In this document: piece by piece, positions 1-2,153 of the stretch
Numbering within the stretch: position 1 is the stretch's first letter
Layout: the number at the start of each line of letters is the position of its first letter
Position numbers and translations under genes: made by a program
DNA from: Salpingoeca rosetta
Lineage: Eukaryota; Protista; Choanoflagellata
Length of the DNA: 41,268 bases
Direction of reading: 5' to 3'
NCBI GenBank assembly: GCA_033442325.1
Contig: JAWQFM010000012.1
Span: forward strand, 283,117 to 324,384
Notes under the pieces: model-generated
What the model was told of the DNA's origin: nothing
Database searches by the model: none
The model's input: the letters and a program-made list of their open reading frames with translations, nothing else

Positions 1-1149
1 CACACGCACACACACACGCAAGTGCAAGCGACTTAGTCGCACTGGGCCAAACATTCGTGTTTGGGGTTGTAGAGTTGTGGTGCAACGCCACGGCCCACGC
101 CACTCACGACACCGAGGTGCCACGGCCGCGCTCGATGCTGTCTGTAGGTTGGCGACACCGGGAGAGGGCCGTGTTCATTTCTCTGTCGAACACTGCCTGC
201 AACCATGGCATCACCCCAGCGAATGTTGATGTGAAGCTGTACAACGCACCTGCAACAAGAAAACAAGACACGCATATCCACACATCCGCACATCCGCTCA
301 CAGGGCGTCGCTCTGTTCCCCTGCTTCTAAGTCTGATTCAGACACGCCGTCATCGTCCCCCTCCTCACACTCTTCGCCCTCTTCTCCATCTTCACCCTCA
401 TCCATCCGTTCGTCAACCCAATCAACCTCCTCATCGAGCACGACTGCGGCTGCTTGTTCAACGTCCATCTCCTCAGTGCTATCAGCGCTCGCAGCTCGGG
501 TGGTTGTACATGGTGCTGCTTGCTCTACTGCCTCCTCTTCGCCCCTGCCATCGATGATGCGCCGCTGCCGCTCCAGCTGCTTGTCGATCGAGTCGATGAT
601 GGCTTGCACGCGCGTCTTGCCATCTTTGCGGTACTGCCCGCGATCCTCTGCCAGGCGTTGGATTTCTTCCTCCAGACGCCTTTCAACATCCTCGAAGGTT
701 GTATCGAGGCTGTATCTGCGGCCGACGTTGCCCTTGATCAGCGCCCACACGAGCTCGATTGGGTTGAGGTCGCTGTAGCACGGAGGGGAGAAGAGCACCT
801 TGTGGCCTTGCGCCTCGGCCAGCTGCACCACCTCGGGTTGGACGTGGTTCTTCACCCACAACTTCAGGCGGTCTTTCAGCTCGCAGGAGAAGTCAATCTC
901 GCTCACGGTCAGGTTCCTGGCTCGCAGAGCTGCAATGACGTCCGCTTTCTTCATTCTCCCCGGGACTGGCGTGTCTGGTGGGAGGGTGCGGTGGTACGCT
1001 GCGTTGTCCATGATGATGAGCGACGGCTGGTGCAGGTTCGGCAGCAACGCATCCTTGAACCAGCTGATGAAGTTGTCAGAATTAAAGGCTTTATGATAGT
1101 CCCCTGTATGGAAGCTCCCACGAGAAGGCTTCCGGGGACGGCCCTGCTG

Positions 1150-1336
1150 TTGCTGTGGTTGCTCAGGGAGGTCTTCGTCAGCGACGGGGCACTTCTTCCG
1201 CGTGTGCCCTGGCTGCTTGCATCGACCACACTTGCGTGTGGATGGTTGCTTCTGTGGTTGTTGAGGCAGGTTTTCTTCAGCGACGGGGCACTTCTTCCGC
1301 GTGTGCCCTGGCTGCTTGCACCGGCTGCACTTGCGC
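1150..1336 (-). repeat. 99-bp tandem duplication encoding two CCHC zinc knuckles
   Basis: cagcgacggggcacttcttccgcgtgtgccctggctgcttgca occurs at 1179 and 1278. In the frame of GDYHK it reads RKCSRCKQPGHTRKKC and RKCGRCKQPGHTRKKC (CX2CX4HX4C). Confidence 0.9.
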
Positions 1337-1504
1337 GCTGATGACTGCGATGCTTGTGGCTGCTCCTCATCGCCTGCACCGTCAGTCTGAGGAATTCGCA
1401 GGGGGATTGGAGGCAGACACGCCGATGGTGGTGATGGTGATGATGGTGGCGGCGGTGGCGGTTGAAGTGACGATGATGGTTGCGGAGGAGGAGGTGGTGG
1501 TGCT

Positions 1505-1785
1505 TGCTGCTGCTGCTGCTGTTGCTGCTGTTGCTGTTGTTGTTGTTGTTGTTGTTGTTGCTGCTGCTGCTGCTGCTGCTGCTGTTGCTGCTGCTGCTGC
1601 TGCTGCTGTTGTTGTTGTTGTTGTTGTTGTTGTTGTTGTTGTTGTTGTTGTTGTTGTTGTTGTTGTTGTGTTGTTGTTGTTGTTGTTGTTGTTGTTGTTG
1701 TTGTTGTTGTTGTTGTTGTTGTTGTTGTTGTCGTTGTCGTTGTTGTTGTCGTTGTTGTTGTTGTTGTTGTTGTCGTTGTTGTCGC
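1505..1785 (-). repeat. (CAA/CAG)n trinucleotide array, about 90 codons of polyQ inside the transposase
   Basis: Direct reading: (ttg/ctg)n on the + strand with one phase break at about 1669. Confidence 0.95.
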
Positions 1786-2153
1786 CGCTCACGCTGCAGT
1801 GCGCTGCCAGGGTCGAAGATCCAGCTCGTGCCTGGAACAGGACCGGCGAGGGCGCGGTCGTTGCGGTCACTGACGGTGCACACGCGCGGATCCGGGCCCT
1901 GAACTGCGAGGGCAAAGCAGTAGCGCCGACCCCGCTTGATCTTGCGATGACTGTGCATGTCTTGACCGTCGTTGGGGTCATACAGGGAGTCTCTGTTCCT
2001 GTTGTAGTTCCTGTCAATGTATGATTCATCGAGATACACCTACAGGCAATTGAGCCACGTGAGACACGAAAAGGGAACATTGCACATGCGAAGAAACATC
2101 GACAACACAGCAGCATGGGCACACACACACACACACACACACACACACACACA

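Follow-up and report, generated by a model that had tools for sequence, protein, structure and literature searches.

A predicted CCHC zinc knuckle within the catalytic domain of a Sailor-like transposase of the choanoflagellate Salpingoeca rosetta

The stretch of DNA analysed here, referred to below as the window, comprises 41,268 nucleotides of the genome of the choanoflagellate Salpingoeca rosetta (GenBank assembly GCA_033442325.1, contig JAWQFM010000012.1, positions 283,117 to 324,384 of the forward strand) and carries close to its start part of a transposon encoding a transposase of the DDE_3 type. As seen from the translations, positions 298-2039 of the minus strand are the last exon of this transposase, which encodes the catalytic domain and an acidic tail (301-2039), ends at a stop codon (298-300) and retains an intact D/D/E triad; the translation matches the Pfam DDE_3 profile with an E value of 1e-10 and 42 bits against a cut-off of 28.6. 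The exon is read in two frames that meet around 1669-1670. Frame A (1671-2039, minus strand) runs from VYLDESY through RRYCFALAVQ to GTSWIF and into a Q/R-rich run, and frame C (301-1668, minus strand) holds polyglutamine (polyQ), a Pro/Ser-rich tract, two zinc knuckles, GRPRKP, GDYHK, IIMDNAAYH, DLNPIE, the acidic tail and the stop. The first catalytic aspartate, D1 (2028-2030), lies in VYLDESY (2039-2019), the second, D2 (1006-1008), in IIMDNAAYH (1017-991), and the catalytic glutamate (754-756), 83 residues beyond D2, in DLNPIE (771-754). These residues fall in the invariant columns D30, D206 and E290 of a 59-sequence alignment (A3), in agreement with an earlier note on this DNA which, working from the letters alone, had called all three intact. 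A word-index protein search gave relatives of the protein in S. rosetta, and four loci were then compared (L001 to L004), one of which, L002, encodes PTSG_03158, a paralogue with 74% identity to the window protein.

An insertion splits the catalytic domain between D1 and D2. The last core element ahead of the interruption is strand β3 (GTSWIF, 1815-1832; in an AlphaFold2 model of the paralogue the strand is at WIF, residues 88-90), and the core resumes at GDYHK (1090-1104), the start of helix α1, whose G, D, Y and H are nearly invariant in alignments A2 and A3 (helices at 176-196 of the model). The interval between WIF and GDYHK amounts to 237 residues, including 106 Gln and 33 Pro. It opens with a Q/R-rich segment (DPGSALQRERR...) that widens into a polyQ-encoding CAA/CAG microsatellite (1504-1814; period-3 arrays found by Tandem Repeats Finder at 1505-1782), followed by the Pro/Ser-rich tract (APPPPPPQPSS...PPIPLRIPQ, 1387-1503), which the 74% paralogue lacks. 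Next come two 99-bp tandem units (1150-1347), each encoding one CX2CX4HX4C knuckle (1329-1288 and 1230-1189); Tandem Repeats Finder reports the 99-bp unit 1.8 times at 1153-1335 with 89% matches, and Pfam zf-CCHC (PF00098) matches two stretches with 23.6 bits against a cut-off of 20.8, a zinc knuckle as predicted from sequence. A basic linker (QQQQGRPRKPSRGSFHT, 1105-1149), containing GRPRKP at 1143-1126, leads into α1; the paralogue linker is basic too and is without GRP. The earlier note had described just such a module between SWIF and GDYHK of a DDE transposase, and it is indeed present on the minus strand with its Pro-rich tract, its two knuckles, the 99-bp duplication and QGRPRKP, all of which are recovered by translation, Tandem Repeats Finder and Pfam; the polyQ is there as well, although the count of about 90 Gln given for it has to be raised to 106.

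The window copy is incomplete: the window edge cuts it, an assembly gap divides it, and its assembled sequence is out of frame. The exon has no start codon, as the note had observed, because it begins at an AG splice acceptor (2040-2041). The frame break consists of two extra bases (tg) at 1669-1670 within a (TTG)n array, i.e. inside the CAA/CAG repeat, and is thus of the +2/-1 type and not the 1-nt break reported before. Upstream of the exon lies the 3' part of an intron (2040-2153, acceptor ...cctgtag) that holds a (TG)n array and splits the conserved motif RLREV|YLDES, whereas homologues read RLREVYLDESY unbroken at this point. An assembly gap of 913 N (2154-3066) covers the N-terminal, presumably DNA-binding exons, the missing part of which is present in the sister copy L001, and is followed by the 5' end of the element with a first-exon fragment (3067-3325, minus strand; boundary near 3325, from blastn of the window against L001, L003 and L004). 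The N-terminal ~250 residues belong to the N-gap and to the first-exon fragment (MKASCHQ..., downward from 3120; MKASCHQLTKAGTTRHAQ). In the sister copies the N-terminal half is conserved and alignable with homologues; Pfam gives a weak hint of HTH_8 (E 0.038) for this half, which in the window itself is covered by the gap. Downstream of the stop, the 3' non-coding part of the element (1-297, minus strand) is 98-99.5% identical to L001, L003 and L004 down to position 1, and the repeat unit extends beyond the window start, so that the window truncates the element on its 3' side.

The spacing between D2 (1008-1006) and E (756-754), DD83E, and the window motifs EVYLDES at D1 and LIIMDNA at D2 match those of the Sailor (DD82E) transposons, in which 78-111 residues, mostly 82-83, separate the second D from E and the consensus motifs are I/VVYLDET at D1 and VIIMDNA at D2 (Shi et al. 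2021, PMC8533490). The form VYLDE(S/T), IIMDNA, the long transposase (about 660 aa) and the length of the element (> 3 kb) are further likenesses to Sailor (PMC8533490), and the closest relatives include a diatom protein, identified as such because its sequence matches one row of an alignment in PMC6875170. In Table S6 of PMC8533490 a 4.17-kb S. rosetta element appears, incompletely characterised, under the entry "DD?E, 381 aa". Judged by its motifs and by this entry, the family is a predicted member of Sailor (DD82E) within the IS630/Tc1/mariner group. To call it an undescribed system, as had been suggested, is thus too strong, since S. rosetta had a listed Sailor element before; the novelty lies in what the insert is and where it sits. 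An unexplained insert of 12-15 aa between the two Asp residues, without Pfam homology, has been reported for Sailor (PMC8533490); the S. rosetta loop differs from it in its 83-237 residues and its one or two CCHC knuckles.

Another Tc1/mariner element of the same species, SrosTm (2071 bp, intronless, with a transposase that reads KDYHGMFDSAYF and a short loop; Southworth et al. 2019, PMC6875170), belongs to the same broad Sailor-like group, and its superfamily alignment contains stramenopile proteins of the GDYHK type. The window family is longer than 3 kb and has introns, and an identity of the two was rejected on account of length, introns and the short KDYHGMFDSAYF loop in favour of a distinct Sailor-like family; the same survey describes seven DNA transposon families, among which the window family is not found (PMC6875170).

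The AlphaFold2 model of the paralogue catalytic domain (predicted local distance difference test score, pLDDT, 86; predicted template modelling score 0.78) has the order β1, β2, β3, insert, α1, β4. It aligns with the catalytic domains of SETMAR, Mos1 and Sleeping Beauty with Z scores of 14.4-15.1 over ~180-190 residues at a root-mean-square deviation of about 3 Å (VIA-align), and a profile search of the PDB matched the Sleeping Beauty variant SB100X (5cr4) with an E value of 4.5e-5. Foldseek alone gave no match for the model at E < 0.001, because of the inserts.

An insert of this kind is rare among the relatives. The loop from β3 (W.F) to GDYHK has 5-13 residues in 51 of the 59 aligned catalytic domains, which bears out the statement of the earlier note that WIF and GDYH normally stand close together and answers its question whether homologues routinely carry the same insert: they do not. 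An exhaustive HMMER search with PTSG_03158 gave 1729 hits (E <= 1e-3), and nearly all of the best 150 align as two stretches that part at the insert. A few homologues have something at the same β3-α1 position, namely a longer loop with basic tracts (P0164, P0075), an RG-rich tract (P0071) or, in the distant, metagenomic Sailor-like transposase P0118 (L005:422-2191, from Logan SRR22388291; about 31% identity), a CX2CX4HX4C knuckle of its own; P0118 is a singleton from one Logan contig. With the insert columns excluded, a within-family tree pairs the proteins of S. rosetta with full support beside an insert-less protein and places P0118 elsewhere, and the approximately unbiased test does not reject a single clade of knuckle-bearers (p 0.29); on this phylogeny the knuckle may have been gained either once or twice. 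A word search with the knuckle region for a possible donor returned only copies of the family itself among proteins of 250-800 aa that share exact 5-mers.

The part of the insert that is shared by the two S. rosetta subfamilies is also the part under the strongest constraint. PTSG_03158 is a single open reading frame that leads from VYLDESY through a short Q/R-rich stretch, one knuckle and a basic linker into the DDE core, and, as judged from sequence comparison, one knuckle with its basic linker is older than the split of the two subfamilies. Between the window and L002, Nei-Gojobori counting gave an approximate ratio of non-synonymous to synonymous divergence (dN/dS) of 0.04 for the knuckle core (22 codons, dS about 1.7), 0.08 for the knuckle plus linker (51 codons) and 0.12 for the DDE core, with dS of 1 to 1.9 across segments. 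For the knuckle core, changes are found at 11 of 16 synonymous sites as against 3 of 50 non-synonymous ones (Fisher p 1e-6). The knuckle thus appears to be constrained at least as strongly as the catalytic core, and since selection on it is strongly purifying (dN/dS 0.04-0.08 at dS > 1), it is probably translated and functional. The earlier proposal of a transposase that gained a module, probably one that binds nucleic acid, is upheld at the level of the family, in which the knuckle is conserved between the two subfamilies and absent from nearly all homologues; the window copy itself is incomplete and, as assembled, has a broken frame.

These data bear on the possibility that the whole insert, knuckle included, is tolerated junk, a neutral passenger in a permissive surface loop. 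The variable loop length in several homologues speaks for it, as do the differences in polyQ, Pro tract and knuckle number among the copies, the abundance of CAA/CAG arrays in the genome and the low confidence of the linker in the AlphaFold2 model. Yet the knuckle core is the most constrained of all segments compared, all eight zinc ligands are intact across both units, and distant homologues, too, carry a knuckle or a basic tract in this loop, so that the explanation is improbable. Between the two 99-bp units 12 codons are different, 5 of them by synonymous and 7 by non-synonymous changes, and their divergence of 11% exceeds that between the copies of the element. The single knuckle of L001 is a chimera of the head of unit 1 and the tail of unit 2; therefore one unit was probably lost by recombination or assembly collapse.

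PTSG_03158 (L002:5372-6580) has other peculiarities. The loop after D1 is shorter by 11 residues, RRGKTTATSATSTIDVGGC stands in place of the RRYSLDTTFEDV of its relatives, and the conserved Trp after the catalytic Glu is lost. The gene appears to be single-copy and may be decaying or diverging.

Copies differ in their polyQ, Pro tract and second knuckle; polyQ and Pro tract are absent from the 74% paralogue. The CAA/CAG array is longest in L001 (279 nt), shorter in the window (about 227 nt) and shortest in L004 (54 nt). The long Gln and Pro tracts are young, unstable repeat growth, and the polyQ, which had been taken for a functional module, comes from this CAA/CAG microsatellite of variable length. 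Five further arrays of the kind lie elsewhere in the window (including 15228-15326, 23972-24040, 29717-29740 and 33467-33490) and in the sister loci, and polyQ-type microsatellites look common in the S. rosetta genome. The candidate AT-hook has likewise been rejected: QGRPRKP gave no Pfam hit to an AT-hook at E values up to 1, and the motif is unconserved, RRARSK being aligned to GRPRKP in the paralogue. The frame breaks differ from copy to copy, lying within the array in the window, near QGP|DPRV and just ahead of the array in L001, and at PPIP|LRIP in L004; L001 and L004 are in frame at the site of the window break (1669-1670). Because each copy is broken at a different place, the frame is continuous across the whole insert at the level of the family, and the breaks are either copy-specific decay or assembly errors.

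According to a further explanation, the insert is wholly or mostly intronic, or an artefact of annotation or assembly, and the mature mRNA lacks it. The deposited models PTSG_04010 and PTSG_00970 treat the polyQ and Pro part as an intron, a good in-frame GTGAGC donor is found at 1792 together with CAG acceptors at 1374 and 1387, and assembly indel errors do occur, as at window position 94, where one base is absent from all four sequencing runs considered (three probable RNA and one DNA, from four studies), so that the extra base is most likely an indel error of the reference assembly. Against this, the knuckles are retained even in those gene models, the paralogue has neither break nor intron at this place, the constraint on the knuckle is of the coding type, and the polyQ/Pro tracts are in frame with both flanks across copies. 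Logan contigs of the same four runs, examined over 30-1503 with 1418-1503 left out as repeat, contain no splice joint in that range, those of the three probable RNA runs passing both acceptors without loose ends, which is weak evidence. An intronic origin of the insert is thus quite unlikely, and what remains of this explanation applies to the polyQ/Pro part only. For annotation, caution is advisable with the S. rosetta gene models of this family, which drop as introns tracts that are in frame across copies.

At the 3' end of the gene, the models PTSG_11539 and PTSG_04010 splice an intron of ~67 nt (window 233-300). Its GTGAGC donor lies across the stop codon, and the protein is thereby lengthened by 46 residues (FTSTFAGVMPW...); in each of the four runs, contigs span 40-371 unspliced. 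At window positions 342, 370 and 1163 contigs from several runs diverge, and these loose ends point to family copies that are variant or truncated, or to places where other sequence is joined.

The family is a mobile, recently amplified transposon and not a single-copy domesticated gene. At the protein level the window exon is 98-100% identical to PTSG_11539, PTSG_04010 and PTSG_00970, with 99-100% given for these three by the word-index search, and PTSG_03798 is a further member of the family, an N-terminal fragment; the four loci compared are distinct from the window, which is thus an additional copy. There are at least five near-identical copies (PTSG_11539, PTSG_04010, PTSG_00970, PTSG_03798 and the window), with a DNA identity of 98-99.5%. 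The copies adjoin unrelated genes and have one sharp 5' boundary in common (window ~3325, L001 3715, L003 3538, L004 3364), upstream of which the flanks are unrelated in each alignment; on the other side, the similarity to L001, L003 and L004 continues past window position 1. When the shared 5' end was compared with the 3' regions of L001 by inverted-repeat and short blastn searches, neither the terminal inverted repeats nor the 4-bp TATA target site duplication characteristic of Sailor emerged, only chance 8-9-mers and (GT)n, the 3' end being outside the window or in gaps, and the same searches did not find the "GGGAG/TACA" end given by Shi et al. The idea that the transposase has been domesticated as a host regulator of chromatin or transcription, with polyQ, knuckles and AT-hook as its new modules, is very improbable, for although the catalytic domain is interrupted by regulator-type modules, the gene has introns and the older paralogue PTSG_03158 is seemingly single-copy with an intact reading frame, the near-identical copies stand at unrelated loci behind a common 5' boundary, each with its own frame break, the full D/D/E triad is kept, the AT-hook is unconserved and the polyQ is unstable in length.

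The copies in L001, L003, L004 and the window each adjoin or include an N-gap; for this reason the family is poorly assembled and its gene models are unreliable. In L001 (7000-7800), as also in L003, L004 and beyond window position 1, the repeat unit extends at least 700 bp past the transposase stop and includes two (GT)n arrays. The same part of L001 holds a minus-strand exon-like piece ending ...PINPVELKKLHNKRREHNRKLNLMDD, which the annotation of that locus assigns to the end of a gene that weakly matches UTP20; the piece ...PINPVELKKLHNKRREHNRKLNLMDD could be a captured host fragment or belong to a chimeric gene model.

Altogether, the window probably holds an incomplete copy of an intron-bearing, multi-copy Sailor-type (DD83E) transposon with a knuckle in the β3-α1 loop of its transposase, where an accessory nucleic-acid contact is its most likely role. 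The identity of the transposon, its multi-copy status, the position of the insert, its rarity among homologues and the purifying selection on the knuckle come from the comparisons given above; DNA binding and a role at the target groove would be expected from what is known of Sleeping Beauty, since its β3-α1 loop belongs to the groove that binds target DNA. The insert is located in the β3-α1 loop of the RNase-H-like core, between D1 and D2, and its old, selected part, about 83 residues long in the older paralogue, would combine a short Q/R-rich helix, one retroviral-type CCHC knuckle and a basic linker. Knuckle and linker would most likely serve as an additional nucleic-acid contact along the edge of the target groove, either in target capture or choice or by holding an unpaired strand. 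In the young subfamily, the loop would have grown to 237 residues by the 99-bp tandem duplication, which gave the second knuckle, and by slippage of the CAA/CAG microsatellite and the Pro-rich tract, a disordered surface loop presumably being tolerant of growth by duplication and slippage.

The nucleocapsid-type knuckle (PF00098) resembles that of S. rosetta in its CX2CX4HX4C pattern, its central G-H and its basic flanks, and differs from it in context, as the S. rosetta knuckle lies inside a DDE core and not in Gag. Extra modules within the RNase-H-like fold that take part in DNA handling are found in hAT/Hermes, Tn5, RAG1 and piggyBac, where they are large folded domains inserted between the second Asp and the Glu. 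The S. rosetta insert, in contrast, lies between D1 and D2 and consists of a mini-domain with disordered tracts. SB100X (5cr4) has the same fold (Z 14.9) and the same β3-α1 position, at an identity of about 16%; its loop, unlike that of S. rosetta with zinc knuckle and low-complexity tracts, has about 6 residues and is domain-free. In the published model of Sleeping Beauty, the β3-α1 loop is part of the target-DNA groove, and the hyperactivity of the RKEN214-217DAVQ and I212S variants has been ascribed to better contact with target DNA at this loop (Voigt et al. 2016, PMC4820933).

Several points weigh against this interpretation. The dS values are near saturation, which makes the dN/dS ratios approximate. 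The label "RNA" of the runs is a guess and contigs miss rare spliced forms, and the GTGAGC...CAG pair (1792 to 1374) could remove the polyQ/Pro tracts in some transcripts, as in the PTSG_00970 model. The linker has a pLDDT below 55 in the AlphaFold2 model, and the position of the knuckle relative to DNA rests on topology. Finally, every copy examined is non-intact as assembled, and present-day activity is putative.

In Tc1/mariner-type transposases, including the gene-therapy tool Sleeping Beauty, the catalytic core is thought to be compact, with target choice exerted through a few loop residues. Here, a natural relative has retained, under selection, a knuckle in exactly that loop in which engineered mutations of Sleeping Beauty increase the affinity for target DNA, which suggests that the β3-α1 position accepts a whole binding module and could guide the design of retargeted transposases. 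With the knuckle insert, the DDE family would gain a new kind of "insertion domain", and the S. rosetta copies illustrate that, in a young transposon family, microsatellite slippage can add over 100 residues to a surface loop of an enzyme. A bolder and rather doubtful extension is that the β3-α1 loop at the rim of the target-DNA groove has repeatedly served Sailor transposases as a docking site for small modules (knuckle, RG-rich or basic) that bind nucleic acid and would confer target choice or capture (e.g. of single-stranded or structured DNA, or of chromatin-bound RNA), with polyQ adding self-association; if true, such modules would represent a previously unrecognised way of target choice or capture.

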